Of a stretch of 64,000 nucleotides of DNA, positions 8,566-51,436 are shown in pieces (position 1 is the first letter of the stretch; every line of letters begins with the position of its first letter). The stretch comes from Entomortierella parvispora E1425 (taxonomy: Eukaryota > Fungi > Mortierellomycota), in contig BQFW01000012.1 in assembly GCA_020891255.1 (NCBI GenBank), positions 1,922,001-1,986,000 of the forward strand. The letters run 5' to 3'. Below the pieces are notes generated by a model that worked only from the letters and a program-made list of their open reading frames with translations, did not search any database and was not told the origin of the DNA. Position numbers and translations under genes: made by a program.

Positions 8566-9180
8566 GATGGCGTCTGTTCAAAAAAAAGTCCTGAAAAAGA
8601 AGGCAAAGGGAGAGAGGAGTGAGTGCGCATGCAAGAAGGGACAGTCAACGGTCGATGACGATGAACGATAGACAAAAAAGGGGGAGAAGAGAGAGAGTCG
8701 ATCATCACTTTGAATCCAGTGACGGAGGAGCGTGATGAGGAAAAGAAGTCTATATTTTTTTCTTTTCTTTACCCTTGAAAGATCCTGTTGCAATGATGGG
8801 GATAGAGGAGATAAAGGAGGGGAAGGGTGGAGCTGAACTCTGCGTCTTTGTACGAGTGCGCGTGTTTGTGTGTGCTTTGTCTGCTGGAAGTGCTGTAGAT
8901 AGACAAAGTGAATGAGAAGGATGGGTATAAATGGTTCTTGTGCTGAAGGAACGGGGCGTGAACGAGCAGGAGAGAACGGGGTGGGCGAGAAAGTGAATGA
9001 ATGAGTGAGTGAAAAGAGAGCGACGGGAGGTGGACGCGGTGCAAAGAAGGAGACGGTGAAGGCGACAAAAGAAAGAGGAAGGGAAGAGAGAAAAAGAAGC
9101 GAAACAACAGAAAAAACACTGTGGAAGGCAGGGGAAGTGAAAAAATAAAGAAATAAAGAGAACGACAAGAGGGCGATCAG

Positions 9181-38229: not shown

Positions 38230-39264
38230 GGTGATTTGAGAAGGATCAGATTGGGGGACGAACAAAGAAAGATTCGACCATGCGATGAATGAAGCATGCA
38301 AACATGTGCCGTTGAAAAAGTGGCGCAAAACGTGACTTGCGACGCGTAAAAACTCGAGCGCACATCGATCCTCATAGCAAACACTGTCATCGAAATCACC
38401 ATCACCACTGCCATGATCACCACCACCACCACGCTTGACGAAAGGAAGCTTGTGCCAGAATACAGGTTCCAAGTCACTGGTTCCTAGATTTCGCCTTGAA
38501 ACAGCTTGGATTCAAACGTGCTATGGATGAAAAAAAAGTTATGACAGAAGCTACTTCATCTGTTCGCTCCACGCTGATCAAAGGCCATGCTTCTGTGGAC
38601 AAGCTTTGTTCACGCGTTCTTGGTCTTGTGGAAGAATACCATCGCTTGGTACCATTGAAGGTACATGTCGCCTATTTAAGCAGGATGCTGAGCTGTAGTG
38701 ATCTGTGAATATGAAGCGCAGGTGTTCAAGGAAGAAGAACTTTTAAAACGTGCACGCTCCAACAAACTAAAGGTAGATGTATAGTTCCATGAAAACTGTT
38801 TCTGAAGACAACTCGAAACTTGCTTTCTGCACATTAGTTAACGCCTTGCCCACCGATATACTACGTGCTGTGGCGTCTTTCAGGCTTACACGATGAAGAC
38901 CGCAGAGGCATATCTTTGAAGAGATGACGATTCTTGCTACGCGATCTGACATAATAACTGCTCTCTCGCAATCTCCACAGGCATGCATAAGGGTGATGCT
39001 GCTGTAGCCTTTTTACCGCTTCGCCACTTCAGCAATAGAGATTCCCTCTCGATGATCATCTTTTGAGCGTTTGATATTACCTGTAGACACGCAGCCGTAG
39101 ATTAATAAGTTAGTTTTCATCGAAGAAAAAAATATCGTTCGTGCTTCCGAAAGATAAAAGGAGCGTCCCACTTGTGATGCTGCTGCAGAGTTGCGAAGGA
39201 CACGGAGTGGTCAAAAGGAGCAAGACGAAAAAAAAAAGCTCGTCAAGTAGACGAGCAAAAGAAA

Positions 39265-39336
39265 GGGCCGAACCGGGAATTGAACCCGGGACCTCTCGCA
39301 CCCTAAGCGAGAATTATACCACTAAACCATCCGGCC
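39265..39336 (-). tRNA. tRNA-Pro (AGG)
   Basis: Exact reverse complement of 39489-39560; cloverleaf with CTCGC-TTAGGGT-GCGAG anticodon arm and GGTTCAATTCC T-arm. Confidence 0.97.
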
Positions 39337-39488
39337 AATCAACTTGTTGGGAGAAAAAGATATTAGACATTTATGATTCTGTCAGTGACTAATCACGTGA
39401 CCTCGATATAGTCACGTGACTGATACCTGTCCGTTCTGGAACTTGCCTTTATAGATGATTTCCCAAAAAATCTTCCATCAAGTTGATT

Positions 39489-39560
39489 GGCCGGATGGTT
39501 TAGTGGTATAATTCTCGCTTAGGGTGCGAGAGGTCCCGGGTTCAATTCCCGGTTCGGCCC
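39489..39560 (+). tRNA. tRNA-Pro (AGG)
   Basis: 72-nt intronless cloverleaf GGCCGGATGG...TTCGGCCC with anticodon AGG; T-runs downstream. Confidence 0.97.
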
Positions 39561-39597
39561 TTTCTTTTGCTCGTCTACTTGACGAGCTTTTTTTTTT
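39561..39597 (+). terminator. Pol III T-tracts with an intervening GCTCGTC-tactt-GACGAGC hairpin
   Basis: TTTCTTTT, a 7-bp perfect hairpin, then T10; mirrored on the other arm. Confidence 0.6.
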
Positions 39598-39735
39598 GGG
39601 TTTATCTATTTGACAACCCAGGTTGTTCGTTTTACCTGACAACCCACTCTATATTTGGTTAGTCTCGTTTTTTATTCGGCAACCCACCTGTCATTCCTCA
39701 ATTGACAACCCAGGTTGCCAAACAAACGTTTATTT

Positions 39736-42700
39736 TTATGAGTGCTGTCTAGAATTGTGACCTTCCCCGCTGCACACTCCACACTTCGTTGATTTTTTTT
39801 TTGTCTCCATGCTACTCTTTATCCGAGAAGTCCTCGGTCTGCCCTTCGTCTTTGTATAGTGAGGATCCTTCATACCTTCTTCGCCTGCCCCCCTCACAAT
39901 GACACGGTTTAGGCCATCTTTAACTGTTTCGAATACTTCTGGATTGGAGTTCACGGTGTCCATGATATTCTTCATCAGGCCAGATATCTCTCCAATGCGG
40001 CGTTTTTTGGAAAGGTTGCGTTTATCAACCCCCGACAGGGATGGCACTGAGGGGAAAACCTTCATGATATCGCTCATGAAAGAAGAAGCAGGCTCTCCCT
40101 CTGCACTCCCCACCTGAGCGACCGTCTTCTGCGTTTTTGCGCTCAAAAACGCCCCTGAGAGATCAAGATCTGTTAGGTCCTGCAGTTCTTCTTTAAACCA
40201 CCGCATCGGAATAAGCCTGACATGATACTTGCATCTGTCACTAACTTGCATCAGATGGAAATAGTGTCGACATACAAATCCGCTGTTTTGGAGGAGGAGG
40301 CAAGTACAAATGTACGAGCCATCAGCCAGTAAAAGTATGTGCTGAAGTGACTTTCGCTCCGTGTCCAAGCGGAACGTCACGTCGAAGATTTGTACAATTC
40401 GATCAGAACCAACGATTGTCTGGATGGACTGGAGAGAGCTCATTTCGCGATCGTCTTTTGACGATCTCTCAATCTAAGGACAAAGAGAAGAATAACGGCT
40501 TAGTACCTCTATCTGGTCTTAGGATTGCGCTTGGGTATTGGAATGATGTACAAGTACTTACTTCCTCGAAATCACCTCCTTCGATTGATCGTGGAGCACA
40601 GGCGTCTATACCTGTGTGTGGATTGGACTGATACAAAACAGAGCGCGACATCTCTAACTTCATCTGACTTTTTGCTGCGATGCCAAGATAGCGATTGTTT
40701 GCATCGATAACATCGGCAAACATTTGCTGAACAAACGTCGACGTTGCGGGATCAACCGTTGTATCCGTCTTGTAGAGAATATACTTTGAAGTCTGGGCTT
40801 CATTTGATAGCTTCTTTTCAATTGCCTCGAACAGTGCTGGAAGGGACGTCTTGCCATTGACGGCCCTTTTGATGGCCGCATTCATACTCTCCACACGCTG
40901 AGTCGACTGCATTCCGGCGGTAAATCTTGTCCCAACCCAAGGCCAAGCCCAGTGCTCGCGCTTCTCGCTTATCCTTTTCAGGTAACCCTCAATCTTTGGC
41001 TTATCAACACCAAAGACCGCAACATGCTCTGACCATCTACGCTCAAAATCGGAGGCCGTAAGCGCGTTTCGGGTTGTCCAAAAAGCTGATATAAAATCAT
41101 TCCAGTCTTTGCCTAGCGCTCCGTGGAGGTTTTTGTTCAGGTTTTGTCGCAGATGCCAGATACAGTTCAAGACGGTGGTCTTGCTTATAGTTGTGGCACA
41201 AGCGGCCTCCATAGCGGGATCTTCGTCGACGAAAATGATATGAGGATATACGTTGTCGCTTGCCGCCAACAGTTGCTCTAGAATCCACTCATAGTCCTCC
41301 ACTGATTCCCCAGAAACCAATGAACACCCTACCAAACGACTCTTTCCTGCATTGTCGATAATGACTATAACATTAAGAGGCATGCCGAAACGGTTCGTCT
41401 TGTAAGTGTTATCGCTGATGACAACATCGCGGTAGCGTCGGTAGAGGTATCTTTGAGAAGGGCTCATCCAGAACATCCTTCTGAGCCGGCCATTTTCATC
41501 CAGATCGGTAGCAAAGAACCAGTCTTTATCGTTGCGCGTTTTATCCTGTAGAATCTTGTGGAGCTCTGCAGCCTCGGAGCCACCGATGTGAGCACTGTTT
41601 TTTGCTTTCTGGATGGCATTTGCGACTGTCCGAAGATCGAACGCTTTGTCTGGCCATTCATGTTGAAGCATGTAAACAATAAACTTGGGATCACATTTGC
41701 CTGCATGGGTGGTAATAAGCTGGAGCATTTCGGCACTGAGTCGTTTATCACGCTGGTTGGACTCCAGGATGTCGCATTTCTTGAGTTCGTGGCAGTGGTC
41801 TGTGACAAGGGAAGTAATACGCCAACGTGGAAACAACTCCCTTGGAGACCGAACAACGATTTGGCATGGGCAGCACTCGCGGCTGGAGGTGCAATTGCGG
41901 TGCTTATCTGGGTCAACATTCTTTTGCGGAACATGTTTTCCAGCCTTCTTGCAACCAAAAATTACTATTCATCGGCAAACCATACTTGTGTCAAAAAGAA
42001 TTGATCCATAGAGAAAAAAAAACAACCTGCAGATTTTAAGTACCTACCTCGGGGACTTTGGCCATTCATCCTCTTGAGTCTGGACTGCATCCTTCTCAGG
42101 AAAAATCCTTGCTTGCGAGCCCATGCGTGGAGTTTTTTCTTCTAGTTCTTCAAGAGTTTCATGCAACTGGCCGATATAAGGTGTCCACGGCAGGCTGTCA
42201 CCCTCTTCAGCACTGTTGCCTGTGATGGCTATGGCGGCAGCCGCTACCTCTGCCCTGGCCCCACATGAAGAGGGTCCGTCAGCTGCAAGAGCATCACTTG
42301 TAATGGTTACGGCGGCGGCCGCTGCCTCTGCCCTGGCCCCACATGAAGAGGGTCCGACATTTAAGAAAGCATCACTTGTAATGGTCTCCTCTAGAATAGC
42401 CGCATCGGCTACAGCTGTAGTGACCCCATCTTCGGTAGGTATCTCTTCATTGACTGCGACTTTTACAATGGCGTTGTCTGTGATGATTGAGTCAGTTGTA
42501 ACTATGTCCGGATCATTTGCCGACACAATATCGAGATCAGCCACCCTTGCCACCCCTTGGCCTCGAGAAGCATGTGCTGCATGTTCGATCTAGATGAATT
42601 GAGTATTAATCTACGGTGGTCGGACAACGGGGGATTTGTGTCATACGTTACAAACAAGCAAAGATTCACCTTGTTGTAGCCGGTGGCCAGCTTCAAAAGC

Positions 42701-43815
42701 CTCAATCGATGATGTGCAGATCGTTCGTGAGTCCAGAGTTCTATTTCAGGATTCATTCTCCTCTCGACAGCATTGATGGAGTTGACAGCGCACGATCCAC
42801 TGCTAGCTGGTTGCCGTGGGACATCGAGATGCTCGATGTGGCTGCTCCAACGATCTATATCAAGCCCACAGCATCTTATCCATTGTCGTATCGCTTGACA
42901 GGCCTCACGAGGTGTGGGATAAGAGAGGGAATCCCCAAATGAGATCTGACATTTAACGAAATCGACCTCGATCGCACCCCAATGAGATGGCATATAAACA
43001 ATCGAGAATGCCTTTTCAACTCGCCCGCTTCGGAGCTCGTCCCTTTTCCATTCCAGGTATAGATTCTTTCGCCAGTTGTTGAGTTGAGTAGGTGTGATCA
43101 AAAGGTATCGATTGCTTGCCCCATACGACTCGGCAAAGAGCTGCAACACCGTGCGCACGACCTCGTCATTAATGAAGCACTCCTTCATGAGACAAAACGC
43201 GTTTCCAATGGCCAATGGCGCCTCAGAAGTTGGCTGAAACTCCCAATGGATGATGCCTGAGGTATTGGAAATTAGGTCGCGGATCCAATCGGCAAAGTTG
43301 CGATCCGAGACGGCATCGATCCAGTTAAACATCTCCATCGCTTGAATGATGAAAGTGTGCGTCTGCACCGCGCCGAGTAAGATTTTGACCGAGGCATGCG
43401 AGAAATCTCCAACGCCATGGATGCGAATGCCCCACGCCTTTTGAGACACTGACGCACCAACTATAAATAAACATATTGTAACTGTGCTGGTCAGGAGTTT
43501 TGCCAATTGACACCTAAACGAAAAGAGCAGCCGATGTTTTCTCTTATTGAACCTACGCAGCATTTCGTTGGCCTTCATAACAACATCTTGCGAAGGTAGC
43601 GTTTTGAGAATTGCAACTCTGGCTTCGAATATTCTCTCTTTGGGCGGTGGCAGCTCATATATGACCTCGACCTCGGTACAAGTTTTAGTAATCGGAAGGG
43701 GGATTTTCAGCAGTGCCTTGCCAGTTTGTAGCCTTTGCCAGTATTGGCTGTACATCACTTTCGATTCTTTCGACGTCCCTGGGTCGTCCACAAGATGATT
43801 AACAGCTGACGACAT
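39736..43815 (-). CDS. Ulp1-like protease fused to FAR1-MULE DDE-SWIM-zinc knuckle transposase; exons 43815-42670, 42589-42048, 41964-40562, 40473-39736; one extra base in T6 at 42133-42138
   Basis: C48 motifs HWGAIEVDF, FGDSL and PRQPASSGSC; FAR1-type AWARKQGF and CPC..W..HCH; DDE motifs DNTYKTN, FVDEDPAM, CIWH and QRVESMN; SWIM CTC..CRH; CGVCSGEGH. Three GT-AG introns give 1275 aa if one A is removed. Confidence 0.8.
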
Positions 43816-44071
43816 CCTATATTTTTTTTAAATGCCAAAATAGACTGTATCAGCAAAACGCTCCAAAGAACTTCAGTAGGTACGAGACAGACAACAAACC
43901 CCGTACAGAGAAGTATGGCTCGGCTGAGGTTATAAGATTCTTGTGAATCTTCGTCGGTGCCTACTGCCGTAGCTTTATATCAGAAGTTCCAACGTTTCAT
44001 TGTCTCCGCTTCGAGTAGAGTAACTCAAAACCCCGAACACTATTTGCAGTCTATGTGTATATACCATATAT

Positions 44072-47000
44072 GTACCATAGTCGGCCAAAAAAAAAAAAAG
44101 ATCCATTTTGCCTTCTGTATGCATGCAATTGACAGGCATCCTCTAAGTCATGGAGGGTGATAGTCCAGTGAGCTCTGACCTTGTCCGGTCCGGAAGACTG
44201 GAGCGGGTATCAGCCGTGTTTCTTTCCTCTGGTATTGATCTACCCCCGGTCAACCCTCAGTCAAAAAAAAAAAAAAAAAACCTCTGCATGCAAGAGTAGA
44301 CCATTCCTAATTGGGACTTCTGGCGACTCGCAAGGACTCGCAAGACGGTATGTGTACCATGGTCGGCCAAAAGAAAAAAAAAAGTGCATTTTGCCTTCTG
44401 TATGCATGCAATTGACAGACATCCCCTAGGTCATAGAGGGTGATAGTCCAGTGGGCTCTGACCTTGTCCGGTCCGGAAGACTGGAGCGGGTATCAGCTGT
44501 GTTTCTTTCCTCTTGTATTGATCTACCCCCGGTCAACCCTCGGTCAAATAAAAAAAAATCCTCTGCATGCAAGAGTAGACCATTCCTAATTGGGACTTCT
44601 GGCGACTCGCAAGGACTCGCAAGACGGTACGTGTACCATGATCGGCCAAAAGAAAAAAAAAAGTGCATTTTGCCTTCTGTATGCATGCAATTGACAGACA
44701 TCCCCTAGGTCATAGAGGGTGATAGTCCAGTGGGCTCTGACCTTGTCCGGTCCGGAAGACTGGAGCGGGTATCAGCTGTGTTTTCTTTCCTCTTGTATTG
44801 ATCTACCCCCGGTCAACCCTCGGTCAAATAAAAAAAAAAAGCCTTTGCATGCAACAGTAGACCATTCCTAATTGGGACTTCTGGCGACTCGCAAGGACTC
44901 GCAAGACGGTATGTGTACCATGGTCGGCCAAAAGAAAAAAAAAAGTGCATTTTGCCTTCTGTATGCATGCAATTGACAGGCATCCTCTAAGTCATGGAGG
45001 GTGATAGTCCAGTGAGCTCTGACCTTGTCCGGTCCGGAAGACTGGAGCGGGTATCAGCCGTGTTTCTTTCCTCTGGTATTGATCTACCCCCGGTCAACCC
45101 TCAGTCAAAAAAAAAAAAAAAAAAACCTCTGCATGCAAGAGTAGACCATTCCTAATTGGGACTTCTGGCGACTCGCAAGGACTCGCAAGACGGTATGTGT
45201 ACCATGATCGGCCAAAAGAAAAAAAAAAGTGCATTTTGCCTTCTGTATGCATGCAATTGACAGGCATCCCCTAGGTCATAGAGGATGATAGTCCAGTGAG
45301 CTCTGACCTTGTCCGGTCCGGAAGACTGGAGCGGGTATCAGCTGTGTTTCTTTCCTCTTGTATTGATCTACCCCCGGTCAACCCTCGGTCAAATAAAAAA
45401 AAATCCTCTGCATGCAAGAGTAGACCATTCCTAATTGGGACTTCTGGCGACTCGCAAGGACTCGCAAGACGGTACGTGTACCATGATCGGCCAAAAGAAA
45501 AAAAAAAGTGCATTTTGCCTTCTGTATGCATGCAATTGACAGACATCCCCTAGGTCATAGAGGGTGATAGTCCAGTGGGCTCTGACCTTGTCCGGTCCGG
45601 AAGACTGGAGCGGGTATCAGCCGTGTTTCTTTCCTCTGGTATTGATCTACCCCCGGTCAACCCTCAGTCAAAAAAAAAAAAAAAAAAACCTCTGCATGCA
45701 AGAGTAGACCATTCCTAATTGGGACTTCTGGCGACTCGCAAGGACTCGCAAGACGGTATGTGTACCATGATCGGCCAAAAGAAAAAAAAAAGTGCATTTT
45801 GCCTTCTGTATGCATGCAATTGACAGGCATCCCCTAGGTCATAGAGGATGATAGTCCAGTGAGCTCTGACCTTGTCCGGTCCGGAAGACTGGAGCGGGTA
45901 TCAGCTGTGTTTCTTTCCTCTTGTATTGATCTACCCCCGGTCAACCCTCGGTCAAATAAAAAAAAAAAGCCTTTGCATGCAACAGTAGACCATTCCTAAT
46001 TGGGACTTCTGGCGACTCGCAAGGACTCGCAAGACGGTATGTGTACCATGGTCGGCCAAAAGAAAAAAAAAAGTGCATTTTGCCTTCTGTATGCATGCAA
46101 TTGACAGGCATCCTCTAAGTCATGGAGGGTGATAGTCCAGTGAGCTCTGACCTTGTCCGGTCCGGAAGACTGGAGCGGGTATCAGCCGTGTTTCTTTCCT
46201 CTGGTATTGATCTACCCCCGGTCAACCCTCGGTCAAAAAAAAAAAAAAAAAGCCTCTGCATGCAAGAGTAGACCATTCCTAATTGGGACTTCTGGCGACT
46301 CGCAAGGACTCGCAAGACGGTATGTGTACCATGATCGGCCAAAAGAAAAAAAAAAGTGCATTTTGCCTTCTGTATGCATGCAATTGGCAGACATCCCCTA
46401 GGTCATAGAGGATGATAGTCCAGTGAGCTCTGACCTTGTCCGGTCCGGAAGACTGGAGCGGGTATCAGCTGTGTTTCTTTCCTCTTGTATTGATCTACCC
46501 CCGGTCAACCCTCGGTCAAATAAAAAAAAATCCTCTGCATGCAAGAGTAGACCATTCCTAATTGGGACTTCTGGCGACTCGCAAGGACTCGCAAGACGGT
46601 ACGTGTACCATGATCGGCCAAAAGAAAAAAAAAAGTGCATTTTGCCTTCTGTATGCATGCAATTGACAGACATCCCCTAGGTCATAGAGGGTGACAGTCC
46701 AGTGGGCTCTGACCTTGTCCGGTCCGGAAGACTGGAGCGGGTATCAGCTGTGTTTCTTTCCTCTTGTATTGATCTACCCCCGGTCAACCCTCGGTCAAAT
46801 AAAAAAAAAAAATCCTTTGCATGCAACAGTAGACCATTCCTAATTGGGACTTCTGGCGACTCGCAAGGACTCGCAAGACGGTACGTGTACCATGGTCGGC
46901 CAAAAGAAAAAAAAAGATACATTTTGCCTTCTGTATGCATGCAATTGACAGACATCCCCTCGGTCATAGAGGATGATAGTCCAGTGGGCTCTGACCTTGT

Positions 47001-47259
47001 CTGGATCAGAAGACTGGAGCGGGTATCAGCTGTGTTTCTTTCCTCTTGTATTGATCTACCCCCGGTCAACCCTCGGTCAAATAAAAAAAAAGCCTTTGCA
47101 TGCAACAGTAGACCATTCCTAATTGGGACTTCTGGCGACTCGCAAGGACTCGCAAGACGGTACGTGTACCATGGTCGGCCAAAAGAAAAAAAGATACATT
47201 TTGCCCTCTGTATGCATGCCATTGACAGACATCCCCTAGGTCATAGAGGATGATGGTCC
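44072..47259. repeat. Tandem array of ~281-bp units (11 complete plus a partial twelfth) inside the MULE
   Basis: GTACCAT anchors at 44072, 44354, 44633, 44915, 45199, 45478, 45762, 46043, 46326, 46605, 46887 and 47166; units differ by SNPs and A-run lengths. Confidence 0.97.
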
Positions 47260-47411
47260 GACATGTTCTTCTGGTTCGAAACAAAGGGACTGACTCGACT
47301 GACTCGTACATCCAGGCTTCTTGTGTCAGCAACTCCCACATGTATAAATATGTGTACTTGCGGCATCCAGTTCTGTATCTTGTCCTCCTCATCGTTCTCA
47401 CCTCTTCCAAC

Positions 47412-48264
47412 ATGCCTCGTGGTGCTTGCACTTACGGCTATTGCGCGCTAGGTCTCCTCCCCCCTGCCGAACCCAAGACCAAAAATCAGAAGAACCATGT
47501 TGCAGGGTATCACGTCGACAACCCCATCAAGTTCATGTGCGGGTACACTGATCGACAAGTCACCTTTAGTCGAATTCCCACAAAACACATGGATTTCGTC
47601 TGCTACTGTGGCCTGACGTTCACCCTTAACTCTTCGATCCATCGCCATTACCATTACTGTGCCGTTGCCAGGGACGCCGCCCTAAATGCAATCGCACATC
47701 CACCTCCTCCTGGTGCAGGTGGTGCAGGCGATGGCAATGGCGTTATTGTTGCGCCGGCGCCTCCTTCAACGGCCCTGGTGGTAGCGGAGCGCAGCGTCGG
47801 GGAGCATTCTGGAGGAAAAGTTGATTGAGCAACATCAAGCCTTCCTGGAGACGTTCACAGGACAGAGCGCGAAGCTCGTCGAGAGCATGACCCAGTCTCA
47901 GTTGTCGTTTCTGAACACCTTCACCGCTTCGTATGCTGAACAAGCTGTGGCACATCAGCGCAGCATCGCTGAACATAACCGCTTGGCCTTAGAGGAGCAG
48001 CGCACGGCCCTCGAGGAGCAGCGAGCTGCCATTGAGATGCAGCGAGCAGCTGTTGAGGAACAGAGAGTGTTCTACAATCGCCATCAAAACAATCAAGCAG
48101 AGATAATGGCCGAGCAGAAGCTTACAAGGGACGAGGTTAGAAACCTCATGTCACTCAAGCGCGATCGATCTTTCACGTTGGAAGTCAGCGAGCGAGCACT
48201 CAAAGGCCTTCAGAGTGACCCATCTTACATGGTCAGCCCCTGCCAGGACGACGAGGACATGTGA
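47412..48264 (+). CDS. MULE accessory gene: Cys/His motifs, Gly/Pro linker, coiled coil; apparent 1-bp frameshift near G4 at 47799-47802
   Basis: C-x4-C..H-x4-H and CYCG..HRHYHYC motifs in ORF 47250-47828. Removing one G joins SVG to SILEEKL-IEQHQAF of the helical ORF 47821-48264. Confidence 0.55.
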
Positions 48265-48512
48265 AAGACAGATAGTGCGCAATCCCACGTCGACGAAGTG
48301 TAACAGGTTATGTTCGCAATTATTCAATAAAAATATTCTTGCGAAATATCTTCTGATGCTATGGCGGACGAGGTGGACTTTTTTTTTTTTTACATATTAT
48401 TTGCTATGTCGAGACAGTGAAGCGAAGTGCGAGAACAAACTACTAACAATGAAGCCCGAATCCCCGCGCAACAAATGCCACGACTCATCGCTGTTTAATA
48501 AAGAATAAAATG

Positions 48513-49100
48513 TTACAAAAGTGTCGATATATGAACCTGGCCACGCACACCAGCCAGTAAGCGCTGGTCTGCCAGCTTAAGGTCATCTTGGGCATCTGGG
48601 CAACGGCCTTGGTGGTGGCCGGAGTGAGGTTTACCGCATTGGCAGGTGTCTGGTGGTAAGATCGTAGCAAATGCATTGTTCCAAGGTTGGCCTCGCTGTG
48701 CTTGCTTCTTCATCTTGGAGCGGATGCCTTGAGTCTTCTCCCAGGCAATAGTAACCTCGCCGCGTGTCTTCCGGATACGTGCAAGAGTATCCCTATCCTG
48801 ACGACGGATAAGTTGATGAGCAACTGCGACCACGACCGAGTGAGGGCCTTTAATAATTGGAGTCCAGGCCTTGATCGAAGCGCAGTGTAACACTCCTTGG
48901 TAGGCAGTGACGACCGACTGAGCCGATGCCAACGGGGCTGGTGCCAACGGGCTGGTGATCTGTCCCCTCACAGGAGGACAGGTCGTTGGCGAGTCATGGA
49001 AGGCAGAGTACAATGATGTCCACAAAGCCGTGTCCGATGGCTGGTACCATGGAGGCGGTTTCGGGCGGCAACTTCGGGTTTGCGGGCTTGTTGCGAACGA
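48513..49100 (-). CDS. Possible third MULE gene with a C-x-C-x7-H-x4-C motif; start unresolved
   Basis: Open frame ending ..DTCQCGKPHSGHHQGRCPDAQ..; no clear in-frame ATG inside the TIR. Confidence 0.3.
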   Translation of the reverse strand, partial: SFATSPQTRSCRPKPPPWYQPSDTALWTSLYSAFHDSPTTCPPVRGQITSPLAPAPLASAQSVVTAYQGVLHCASIKAWTPIIKGPHSVVVAVAHQLIRRQDRDTLARIRKTRGEVTIAWEKTQGIRSKMKKQAQRGQPWNNAFATILPPDTCQCGKPHSGHHQGRCPDAQDDLKLADQRLLAGVRGQVHISTLL

Positions 49101-49595
49101 GGTGGAGCTCACTATCTGACAACCCAGGTTTCCATGCAATTTTCCAAAGTGTGACTGGTGGGTTGTCAAACAAAACGAACAACCTGGGTTGTCAAATAGA
49201 TAAATCCTTTTTTTTTCGTCTTGCTCCTTTTGACCACTCCGTGTCTCCTTCAAGTAAGGTCGACCTCCAGTTTCCCATCAAACAGTTCCATGCACGTATT
49301 TAGTCTCTATTTATAATCATGGGCTTGAAAGCTATCAGGCGTAGAAAATGCGTCGACCCAATCCAGATCAAGAGAAAAAAAACCGTTGAAATGTTCGTGG
49401 GTACAATACACTGAAGCTTGCGGATCAAATTCGAGGCGTATAGCACGGTAATAATGAAGTTTTTAATGACAAAAAGAACGTGAGTGACTCTCCTATTTCG
49501 AGCTTGGATAATGACACCACAGTTCCCCATGGTGGCGGATATGGGATGGTCTGCCAACAGACAGAAATGCAGGGTGGTCGTCAGGTCGATGAAAT

Positions 49596-50414
49596 TTAAA
49601 CAGTGTTTGCAAAATCGCCTTCGACGCCCTCCTGCATGAAAGCTGCATGGCCTAGAATTGTCACTGCACTGGCGCCTACATTCCAGGGGTTGAATAAAAG
49701 GCAGTTAGGAATAGACCTTTTTTGCAGAAATTGCCCTTCAAGAAGTGTACTAGTGCTTACCAATGATATAAAAAATGGTGCCAATAGTCGAGCTGAAAAA
49801 GAAGAGAGGAACAGCGACGATCATTAGACCAGTTTGGAGCTGTCGAGCGGAATAAGTCGTGGATCCGATCACAGTGCCCTCTGGTGGCACCTTTGAGATG
49901 AAGTGCATGCCTCCCACCACTACACCAACACTGAACATCAACATGACATTTGTGATCCTATCGAGTATGAGAATATTGTCAGCGTCTGGTCAAATGGACG
50001 TCGGGTTTCCCAAATCAGTATGCCTGCATGCTTACAAACTGTATGCGGTGATTCCAAGAAACATAAGCATGTAATTGCCCTGGAAATAGGACAGGTTGTA
50101 GTTAAAGCGGGATGTTACACCTAATTGAGAGGTCGATCAACAAAATGGGTCAGCTTTATCCTATGAGTTCAAGGCCAAACGAAAATAAAGCCCTCCTTAG
50201 ATAGGCATAGTTGCATACTGGCAAGACCTGTGGGCTTTGAAAACCGGTTGGTATCAAAGAACTCGGACATTGGCCTCAAGGACGAGAGACGCTCTTCGCG
50301 AAACTTTTTGATAAAGCCCAAGCCTAGGGTTGCAGGGGATTCATCGGACGGTGGCAGGGGAAATGAGCCAGAGAAGGGATTTGAGGGCACTGGGGTGTAT
50401 GCAGGAGCAGCCAT
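49596..50414 (-). CDS. YIP3: PRA1/Yip3 prenylated Rab acceptor, four exons
   Basis: LSSLRPMSEFFDTNRFSKP, VTSRFNYNLSYFQGNY and GASAVTILGHAAFM motifs. Confidence 0.88.
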
Positions 50415-51436
50415 GAGGATGTACTGGGGGAAGGGGGATTTGATTAGGTCGAGGGAGGAAGGAAAGAAAGAGAGGAATGGATGTCCAAACGAATGTCCAA
50501 AGGAAAAAAGAGAGCGCGAGATTTCCTTTTGTGAATCTCTTTCTTGGCGCTGTGGCACCGGTCGCCATGCGGTTGAGACGGCCTGTCTTCTTTCTCATCA
50601 CTTTTGTCTGCAGACATTGTAAACGCAGATGGGTCCATGGCATCTGAACGCTCCCCCCCTTCTCGCCTGAACTTCTTCCTCTCCTCTAGTTAGGTGCCAT
50701 TGCCATATCTCATTTCATTCTATGCGAGGACACCTCATTGCCAACACAATCACAGCGTGGATGAAATGGCCCCTGTGAGTGGAAAGGACGAAGGATGGCA
50801 GTGATTTCAGAGGACCTGATGCACGAGTGGAGAGTGCAAGGAGAGGGGAACGGGAGCGAGATGGTCATCGGTCTGTCTTCCTCTTTCTCTCTGCGGACAG
50901 GACAGGACAGGGCAGAGCGAACAAACAAGGCTGAACGAACAAGGGCCCGCCTGATTTTATTTGTTTCCGTTCTTCCTCTTTTTTCATCTCTCTCTGTCCA
51001 TCATCCCTCCATCTGTCTGCTCAACTAGCACTCCCTTCCCTGATCCCTTTGATCCCCCATCCTTCCTTCCCTCCCTTTTCTCCTTGTTGCTCTCCTTCGT
51101 CTGTCTCGAAGGCATCCGTCCTTGTTTCTTGTTCCCCTATTTTTTTTTTTTGGTTAATCGGCTGATTCGTCACCCGTCCTTCTTTGGCGCCACTTTTTGT
51201 GTTTTCCCTCCATTTTTCGTTTTGTTCTTGAGAGGTAATCGAAATAACAACCATGATCTCCTCGCCATGGCTCATCCTTGTCCCAGCTACCGGGATGGAG
51301 TTCTCATTGAATGCAAAGCTGACCGACATTACCTTGTTTATTGTCATGTACCCACCTAGGCACTTGCAAAAGACTTAACGCAAACATTCAAAGGCAAAGC
51401 TGCTTATAATCAATCCGCAGGGCGTATGAATCCACC

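Follow-up and report, generated by a model that had tools for sequence, protein, structure and literature searches.

A young Mutator-like element of Entomortierella parvispora with a protease-transposase gene, a candidate regulatory zinc-finger gene and insertion sites behind tRNA genes

A stretch of 64,000 nucleotides from the fungus Entomortierella parvispora E1425 (GCA_020891255.1, contig BQFW01000012.1, positions 1,922,001–1,986,000; hereafter the window) carries a Mutator-like element (MULE) with a length of 9,610 bp at 39598–49207. Judged from its sequence, this is an autonomous-type and very young element with two genes of its own: a leftward gene for a transposase with an Ulp1-like protease domain, and a rightward accessory gene, ACC, for a zinc-finger protein. 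The two genes diverge around a tandem array of 3.2 kb. All 11 copies that were recovered lie a short distance behind tRNA genes, and the element actively targets tRNA-gene trailers. The best explanation overall, which we hold with moderate confidence, is a young tRNA-targeting two-gene MULE in which ACC would act as a regulator on an amplified module of its own upstream region.

Copies of the element and their sites behind tRNA genes

The element is bounded by a left (39598–39647, plus strand) and a right (49158–49207, minus strand) terminal inverted repeat (TIR), located by an inverted-repeat search and with a 32-nt probe. Each TIR is 50 nt long and the two are 92% complementary, in line with the TIRs of Mutator elements. 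The probe, taken from the left end, finds two matches in the window, which are the two TIRs only, where none is expected by chance. Subterminal GACAACCC(AGGTT) motifs are present at the left end at 39612, 39638 and 39704. Direct inspection of the sequence reveals a target-site duplication (TSD) of 9 bp, TTTTTTTTT, with its left copy at 39589–39597, in the oligo-T tract that follows a tRNA gene, and its right copy at 49208–49216. A first-pass annotation of the window had proposed both TIRs, the 3.2-kb array between them and a rightward gene with Cys/His motifs and a coiled coil. All of these are present, the array at 44067–47259 and the gene at 47412–48264, and the TIRs are now accompanied by the TSD.

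Copies were gathered through a search with the rightward open reading frame (ORF), which matched EMPS_02794 of GCA_020891255.1, and then through exact-protein look-ups, and ten were found beyond the one in the window. Eight of the 11 copies are full-length (9,604–9,614 bp, except for one of 8,482 bp with an array that is four units shorter). The other three belong to one deletion derivative of 4,293–4,598 bp, in which element position 1312 is joined to the array; most of the transposase gene is lost, and 3.8–4.8 array units, ACC and the right end are kept. The same termini delimit all 11 copies. The TSD is a perfect 9 bp in nine of them and matches at 8/9 and 6/9 positions in the other two. 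Contig depth in the DNA sequencing run X1 is 858 for the element as against 75 for its flank, which gives a copy number of ∼11.4. The annotation had asked for a check of whether the array and the accessory genes are retained together; for the array and ACC they are, since the sequence of both is found in 11 of 11 copies, including the three non-autonomous derivatives.

Apart from the array, an alignment of the full-length copies has differences in 15 columns: 13 indels of 1–2 bp and two substitutions. Twelve of the indels are located at homopolymer runs and one at a GA dinucleotide repeat; homopolymer discrepancies are seen at 42013, 42133, 42388, 47708 and 47799. The E1425 assembly was built from GridION reads, with polishing by Nanopolish and Pilon (PMC8759367, which names DRA010776 for the DNA-seq and DRA013164 for the RNA-seq reads), and most of the indels between copies are therefore probably assembly errors. 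The element family is very young. NCBI gene models vary among the window copy and copies L004–L008, L019 and L020, with lengths of 125, 150, 234, 283 and 337 aa for ACC and of 239 to 1164 aa for the transposase. These differences arise because homopolymer lengths differ from copy to copy in the Nanopore-based assembly, in which repeated elements are probably under-polished.

Every copy is inserted 24–69 bp downstream of the 3′ end of a tRNA gene. The targets represent nine tRNA species (Pro twice, Gln, Ile, Tyr twice, Glu(CTC), Glu(TTC), Val, Cys and Leu), and the end of the element that is proximal to the tRNA can be either one, depending on the copy. Several copies are located inside the oligo-T tract behind the tRNA. 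The association is therefore one of position, with a narrow window and many tRNA identities. The E1425 genome contains 192 tRNA genes in 38.7 Mb (PMC8759367), which gives a random insertion a chance of about 2.3 × 10⁻⁴ of falling into such a trailer window. Selection after insertion is implausible as the cause of an 11 of 11 association among near-identical copies, and we therefore conclude that the element actively targets tRNA-gene trailers. The deletion derivative, without most of the transposase gene, has likewise spread to three tRNA genes. The transposase, via its own domains or via a partner, may be tethered to the transcription complex of RNA polymerase III (Pol III) or to the open chromatin around it.

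In the window, the target is a tRNA-Pro(AGG) gene at 39489–39560 on the plus strand (ARAGORN; Rfam RF00005, 56.6 bits). The distance from its 3′ end is 28 bp to the start of the TSD and 37 bp to the first base of the element. An inverted tRNA-Pro(AGG) twin is located at 39265–39336 on the minus strand (ARAGORN, inverted-repeat search and Rfam). The insertion split one arm of this older inverted pair, and the sister arm retains the uninterrupted sequence. The site (39199–39597 plus 49208–49245) is an arm of an inverted duplication of ∼155 nt with two convergent-flank tRNA-Pro(AGG) genes, and the same inverted pair is seen again at copy L002 and twice in the Linnemannia elongata locus L013. An Rfam scan of the element returned the flanking tRNAs only, with no Rfam family for the array. 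Contigs of run X5, from another strain, fuse the tRNA trailer to 49209 in the manner of an empty site; the sister arm yields an identical junction, and this is not counted as proof.

The protease-transposase gene

The leftward gene spans 39736–43815 on the minus strand and was delineated from ORFs, Pfam matches, an intron search and the models of sister copies. It consists of four minus-strand ORF pieces, which carry, in order, an Ulp1/SENP-like domain, a linker with a 78-bp repeat, the MULE DDE core and the last exon. Short introns are predicted at ∼42546–42646, ∼41921–42047 (two alternative choices) and 40474–40561. The DDE core (41141–41425, minus strand; residues 138–232 of the ORF at 40469–41836) matches PF10551 above the cut-off with E = 5.2 × 10⁻²⁰, and the transposase also matches PF00872 with E = 1.8 × 10⁻⁵, as is characteristic of DDE transposases of the MULE/MuDR type. 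The linker, which connects the protease to the DNA-binding part, contains 2.1 copies of the 78-bp tandem repeat at 42221–42385 (minus strand; tandem-repeat search and translation). In the last exon a SWIM-like CxCx9CxH motif, without a significant Pfam match for SWIM, is followed by a terminal Zn-knuckle-like motif. The FAR1 domain (PF03101) was not recovered by Pfam from single exons and is on record in the annotated models of sister copies; NCBI models two of these copies as single proteins of 1164 aa with FAR1 and MULE domains. The first-pass annotation had read this gene as a ULP–FAR1–DDE–SWIM–Zn-knuckle fusion. Its DDE and N-terminal Ulp1/SENP-like domains stand, while FAR1 is taken from the sister-copy annotation and the SWIM-like motif is recognized by eye.

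The Ulp1/SENP-like (peptidase C48) catalytic domain at 42661–43203 (minus strand) was identified from a family alignment and a profile search against the PDB. The 13 protease homologues, from Mortierellaceae and metagenomes, have invariant HWG, FGDSL, QP and GSC motifs, and the catalytic residues His278, Asp295, Gln335 and Cys342 (H278, D295, Q335 and C342 in the numbering of the first-exon ORF) are invariant or nearly so in 14 family members. SENP1 is the best match to the family profile (E = 9 × 10⁻⁴), followed more weakly by Ulp1, SENP3 and SENP5, and the ten top matches are all SENP or Ulp1 proteins. In the alignment with SENP1 the catalytic His, Asp, Gln and Cys are matched in order and spacing, as is expected for the triad of a C48 peptidase. 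PF02902 has no match in the protease ORF of the window and weak matches, below the threshold, in four of the 14 family members (best E = 0.0035). Likewise, a phmmer search with the protease ORF against PDB sequences returned nothing, and the family profile alone gave matches.

By its reading frame the protease domain belongs to the transposase instead of forming a VANB-like gene of its own, because the two NCBI models of 1164 aa are single proteins, because copy L004, with three canonical short introns, has an uninterrupted ORF of 1274 codons from the protease ATG to the final stop, and because one uninterrupted ORF of the relative P0082 covers the protease together with the start of a FAR1-type domain. 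In the window copy an extra T at 42133, in a T-run, stops the transposase frame at codon 556. Given the assembly error pattern, this frame stop is unproven as damage.

The accessory gene, its upstream array and a nested LINE fragment

ACC (47412–48264, plus strand) is an unspliced gene that encodes 283 aa when intact, as seen from the comparison of ORFs among copies, AlphaFold2 (AF2) models and RNA depth. Residues 1–95 contain two zinc sites, C6/C11/H29/H34 and C64/C66/H79/C83, residues 96–129 form a disordered linker and residues 130–267 form a single long helix. The AF2 models, with a pLDDT (predicted local distance difference test) of 85 for the whole protein and 91 for the zinc-finger domain, consist of two finger-like units with helices at 24–33 and 73–82, the linker and one helix of 138 residues. 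The conserved part of the protein is formed by the first ∼90 residues, and the zinc ligands are at least 90% conserved among 39 sequences. In each site two Cys and two His or Cys ligands are positioned on a β-hairpin/helix unit. The zinc-finger domain is basic, with a pI of 9.0.

The family profile of ACC matched finger 3 of ZBTB43/ZNF297B (E = 1.6 × 10⁻⁴) and fingers of CTCF and SALL4. The zf-C2H2 family of Pfam matched three of the 39 family members, with E = 0.016 or weaker and thus below the threshold, and Pfam gave no match for the ACC ORF of the window. Fold searches of the PDB, AFDB clusters and the ESM atlas with the model of the zinc-finger domain gave weak C2H2-like matches and no named fold, and a feature-based atlas search with ACC (score 0.85) provides a lead only.

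An exhaustive HMMER search with ACC found 61 representative relatives, of which all named ones are from Mortierellaceae (Linnemannia, Dissophora, Entomortierella, Mortierella and Haplosporangium). ACC homologues occur in elements of other Mortierellaceae. ACC lies beside the protease-transposase gene in divergent orientation in both E. parvispora and L. elongata, and it adjoins the right TIR in E. parvispora and in a metagenome lineage, at protein identities of 47–55%. The ratio of nonsynonymous to synonymous substitution rates (dN/dS) against the L. elongata homologue is 0.19, with dS saturated. In an independently deleted lineage from peat and soil metagenomes, ACC is kept beside the last transposase exon and the TIR. 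This persistence in two independently deleted non-autonomous lineages is counted as support for a regulatory function of ACC in the element. A metagenome scan with the ACC alignment found no relative, and one with P0008 found two further copies of the deletion-derivative lineage.

The ACC of the window reads GGGG at 47799, where three copies read GGG, and its frame is shifted after about residue 130. GGG is carried at full depth by the single X1 contig of the same sample and by most of the RNA depth. The frameshift is therefore most likely an assembly artefact, and a real mutation was rejected. An intron that links the two frames was also rejected: RNA contigs have no joint in ACC, and intact copies have a single ORF of 283 codons. 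The derivative copy L019 has lost exactly one 21-bp (7-residue) in-frame repeat of the ACC coiled coil, equivalent to 47992–48012 in the window.

ACC-type genes are also found in other surroundings. The paralogue EMPS_02200 (L015:9457–10657, 38% identical) begins 463 bp downstream of an E. parvispora tRNA-Ser gene; no transposase or TIRs were found nearby, which makes it a possible relic of a different element that targets tRNA genes. TIR searches around the ACC paralogues at L014 and L015 and around the L. elongata element at L013 gave no clean boundaries. L013 is degenerate and has a nested element with inverted ends of ∼250–400 nt at L013:13073–17425; its divergent arrangement of protease and ACC is intact at 8931/10001. 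In Linnemannia gamsii (L016:1280–6941) an ACC-type zinc-finger gene is located beside a DUF6589 protein of 1253 aa, behind a CT-rich repeat of 89 bp × 4.

Transcription was analysed as the depth over 3,241 nt of the element's right part in sequencing runs. A search of RNA runs with 1.9 kb of the right part listed none; without that restriction two runs of the source sample were returned, and one of these is RNA-like. Run X2 is from the same sample as the assembly. Its contigs have Illumina adapters at their loose ends and include three GT–AG joints in the host gene next to the element; X2 therefore behaves as the RNA-seq library of the genome paper (PMC8759367). The host gene in question (49300–50600, minus strand) is expressed and has three short GT–AG introns at 49675–49759, ∼49957–50034 and ∼50119–50216. 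Contig word depth in X2 is 52,000–236,000 over ACC (∼47.4–48.3 kb) and zero just upstream, compared with 87 elsewhere in the right part of the element and 70–330 over the spliced host gene. The word depth of ACC is thus ∼1000-fold that of the neighbouring host gene and is far above it even after division by 11 copies. The RNA depth starts just downstream of a TATAAATA box at 47343–47350 (plus strand), which lies ∼60 bp upstream of the ACC start codon. Transcription of ACC is driven by a TATA promoter of its own, and its apparent level is very high.

The array between the two divergent genes was defined by a tandem-repeat search and by unit alignment. It consists of 11 full units and one partial unit of 279–284 bp with 94% matches, and the units are of three types arranged in a three-unit higher order. 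Its length varies among copies, with 11.4, 7.4, 4.8 and 3.8 units. The 3′ part of the unit and the unique stretch before the ACC ATG both align to the single-copy intergenic region of 313 bp in a relative from a metagenome source, the ACC protein of which is 55% identical. The common blocks are CCATTCC..ATTGGGA, TGCATGCAATTGA, CATCCC.TAGG, GCTGACTCG, a TATA-like box and the ATG context. Because unit and upstream region align to the same single-copy region, the array is an 11-fold tandem amplification of ACC's own upstream region. At the position of the array, this metagenome relative has only a two-fold internal duplication and the L. elongata element has a 108-bp × 2.2 repeat. Every one of the 22 occurrences of the palindrome TGCATGCA in the window falls inside the array. 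A search for short motifs conserved upstream of ACC homologues (TGCATGCA and CCAAT) gave no consistent result.

The first-pass annotation had counted two zinc-motif genes, of which ACC is one. The other, a leftward CCHC-like ORF at 48513–49253, starts outside the element and crosses the TIR, and its first ATG within the element is located ∼65 codons before the stop. It belongs to a 5′-truncated fragment of a non-LTR (long terminal repeat) retrotransposon, or long interspersed nuclear element (LINE), at 48379–49096 on the minus strand, recognized from protein and nucleotide homology. The fragment comprises the C-terminus of ORF2 with the CCHC motif, the 3′ untranslated region (UTR) and a poly(A) tail, which is the T13 run at 48379–48391 on the plus strand, and it is flanked by its own 10-bp TSD, ACGAGGTGGA, read directly at 48368–48377 and 49097–49106. 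Homology of ORF2 and 3′ UTR, poly(A) tail, 5′ truncation and TSD together are those of a non-LTR insertion. Its protein homologues are 57–79% identical and include EMPS_06752 elsewhere in the E. parvispora genome. The nucleotide identity of 48379–49094 to L017 and L018 is 75–78% and extends past the stop codon and along the 3′ UTR as far as the poly(A) tail, and at the metagenome locus L018 an RNase H ORF lies directly upstream of the homologue. In metagenome relatives of the MULE, only ∼48 bp separate the ACC stop codon from the TIR. Pfam gave no match for the CCHC-like ORF. The LINE homology, poly(A) tail, own TSD and short gap in the relatives identify a LINE insertion and rule out an accessory gene; by sequence this is a dead fragment inherited by all copies.

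The sole RNA contig over the LINE fragment carries six substitutions that are typical of the deletion-derivative subfamily. In a related LINE family of E. parvispora (L017:9745–11400), several 3′ ends, each with a poly(A) tail, are stacked in tandem. In the source strain, contig depth at 48455–48576 (LINE 3′ UTR) and 49176–49216 (TIR) is several-fold above that of the remaining element. In two other strains of the same species label (X3 and X5), nothing of the element but these two pieces was found, at high depth, and ACC and the inner parts of the element are absent there at an identity of at least 90%. Related LINE and MULE or miniature inverted-repeat transposable element (MITE) families therefore have these ends in common.

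The role of the accessory module and comparison with known systems

In the explanation that we prefer, ACC would be an element-encoded, probably dimeric nucleic-acid-binding regulator. It would act on the amplified upstream module, which is common to both divergent genes, and as an auto-activator would keep the element transcriptionally on. In practice such a role overlaps with that of an anti-silencing factor, and it is the weaker claim. The 11-fold amplification of the module would explain the extreme transcript level of ACC.

A number of observations weigh against this explanation. The expression of ACC is given as contig word depth from one run, summed over 11 copies, and is a rough measure. 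Zinc fingers of the ACC type can bind RNA or protein as well, and a Foldseek search with the zinc-finger model returned nothing below E = 0.7 in the PDB and, in AFDB, C2H2-type proteins with a TM (template modelling) score of ∼0.5. Outside the E. parvispora family the big array is missing, and relatives have two small repeats or none in its place, so that it is not needed for the family's existence. The TGCATGCA palindrome is kept upstream of ACC homologues in one relative only, and not in a second close relative nor in distant ones. The derivative copies L019 and L020 have a common 2-bp deletion (48118–48119) that truncates ACC, yet occupy different sites; mobilisation therefore does not depend on an intact ACC in cis, and ACC may act in trans. 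Metagenome relatives (L009:540–1460, L010 and L021) have an in-frame stop after codon 91 of ACC. This stop falls exactly between the zinc-finger domain and the linker, and gene callers give the C-terminal 213 aa only.

Tethering to Pol III genes by ACC or by the protease domain is a serious rival. ACC would in that case be an integration or targeting cofactor that brings the transpososome to the Pol III machinery or is needed for reinsertion, and the array would be a strong promoter. The ORF1 protein of Dictyostelium TRE5-A has been proposed to tether in this way, MURB of maize MuDR is needed for reinsertion, and integration-required accessory ORFs such as mudrB are known in MULEs (PMC6446971). 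The strict targeting of tRNA trailers in 11 of 11 copies and the persistence of ACC in non-autonomous derivatives would both fit. However, profile and fold searches with ACC revealed no similarity to Pol III factor-binding proteins, a stoichiometric targeting factor has no obvious need for a ∼1000-fold transcript level, and the transposase could tether equally well through its Ulp1-like domain or a FAR1 domain. We regard a cofactor role for ACC as unlikely, though it comes first among the alternatives.

The first-pass annotation had proposed a VANDAL-like multi-gene MULE. The Ulp1-like protease, the array and an element-specific zinc-finger gene bear this out; a separate protease gene and a second accessory gene do not form part of the element, since the protease is fused to the transposase and ACC is the one accessory gene. 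Applied to function, the proposal would make ACC a VANC-like anti-silencing factor that binds its own tandem array in a sequence-specific manner and removes repressive marks, with the transposase-borne Ulp1-like protease helping against SUMO-dependent silencing. On the most far-reaching reading, a VANDAL-type system of self-activation or anti-silencing would have been assembled independently by a cut-and-paste DNA transposon of an early-diverging fungus, in which retrotransposon-style tRNA targeting has also evolved. VANC is, with TnpA and the AtMu1 transposase, among the transposon-encoded sequence-specific regulators known in plants (PMC5735166; bioRxiv 10.64898/2026.08.24.746577). VANDAL21/Hiun, with VANA, VANB and VANC, has the same ingredients, namely a Mutator-superfamily transposase, an Ulp1-like domain, a lineage-restricted accessory protein and dynamic non-coding tandem repeats (PMC5735166). 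The number of array units varies between copies, as it does in the target repeats of VANC, and ACC is kept in all copies and strongly transcribed. On the other hand, no VANC homologue was detected among the 61 ACC representatives in the HMMER search, in which the named members are all from Mortierellaceae and the VANC sequence itself was not compared directly. The targets of VANC are dense short motifs, whereas here the units are 280 bp long and derive from one promoter region, and no short motif is robustly conserved between relatives. The family is young and expressed, and is not evidently a target of silencing, past or present. Here, moreover, the protease is carried within the transposase and one accessory gene takes the place of two, and the element has clear 50-nt TIRs and targets tRNA genes, in all of which it differs from VANDAL21. 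Convergence on a complete VANDAL-type system is thus improbable in our view.

Least probable is that ACC and the array are passengers, that is, a captured or selfish lineage-specific gene and a neutral satellite-like expansion: MULEs often take up host fragments (PMC6446971), ACC-like genes occur at L014, L015 and L016 where no transposase was found, the array is missing in relatives and two derivative copies moved despite a damaged ACC, but the position of ACC next to the protease-transposase gene or the right TIR is conserved at only 47–55% protein identity, its dN/dS is 0.19, and it is a complete unspliced gene with its own conserved promoter and not a fragment.

Like the present element, maize MuDR (mudrA and mudrB) and Yarrowia lipolytica Mutyl (mutA and mutB) are two-gene MULEs with 9-bp TSDs and a family-restricted second ORF (PMC6446971). 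Second ORFs named there are mudrB, mutB and vanB/vanC, with mutB described as DNA-binding and mudrB as required for integration. In contrast to MuDR and Mutyl, the two genes of the present element diverge around a 3.2-kb array, and the named members among the 61 representative matches revealed no sequence relationship of ACC to either. A protease domain or tRNA targeting is not mentioned for MuDR or Mutyl in the passages of PMC6446971 that were read.

A C48 domain that travels with a DNA transposon is also found in plant KI-MULEs and other Ulp1-carrying MULEs and in C48-bearing fungal transposons, and the C48 protease is among the accessory domains used for recognising fungal DNA transposons (Muszewska et al. 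2017, PMC5751038). Here, unlike in those elements, it is an N-terminal in-frame fusion to a transposase of the predicted FAR1–MULE–SWIM type and is too divergent for the Pfam threshold.

In its choice of sites the element resembles yeast Ty3 and Ty1 and Dictyostelium TRE5, TRE3 and Skipper-2, which use a narrow window beside many tRNA genes of any identity. Skipper-2 and TRE3 also insert downstream of tRNA genes, and PMC5006619 describes positional targeting beside tRNA genes for retrotransposons only. Those elements are retrotransposons that use contacts of integrase or ORF1 with Pol III factors, whereas the present one is a cut-and-paste DDE transposon. Among DNA transposons, Dada elements are likewise associated with tRNA or other small-RNA genes, but they insert at one specific sequence inside a gene family with a TSD of 6–7 bp (PMC3706591). 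The present element has a 9-bp TSD, lies at a variable distance of 24–69 bp outside and behind nine tRNA species, and encodes a MULE transposase and not one of the Dada superfamily.

A literature search found no description of the present MULE family, and in the literature searched neither a VANDAL-like module nor positional targeting of tRNA genes was found for a fungal MULE. Because the family is young, has 11 near-identical copies and is expressed in a culturable fungus, the roles of ACC, the protease and the targeting are directly testable, and a DNA transposon with built-in targeting of tRNA trailers could serve as a tool for integration at safe sites. Multi-gene and Ulp1-carrying MULEs as such are already known. 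Compared with the literature searched, three features are new: a DDE cut-and-paste element with a safe-haven strategy, the insertions of which fall no more than ∼70 bp behind tRNA genes, whatever their identity; an accessory gene of the zinc-finger/coiled-coil type that is specific to Mortierellaceae, has exceptional apparent transcription and is kept by non-autonomous derivatives; and an 11-fold amplification of that gene's promoter region inside the element.

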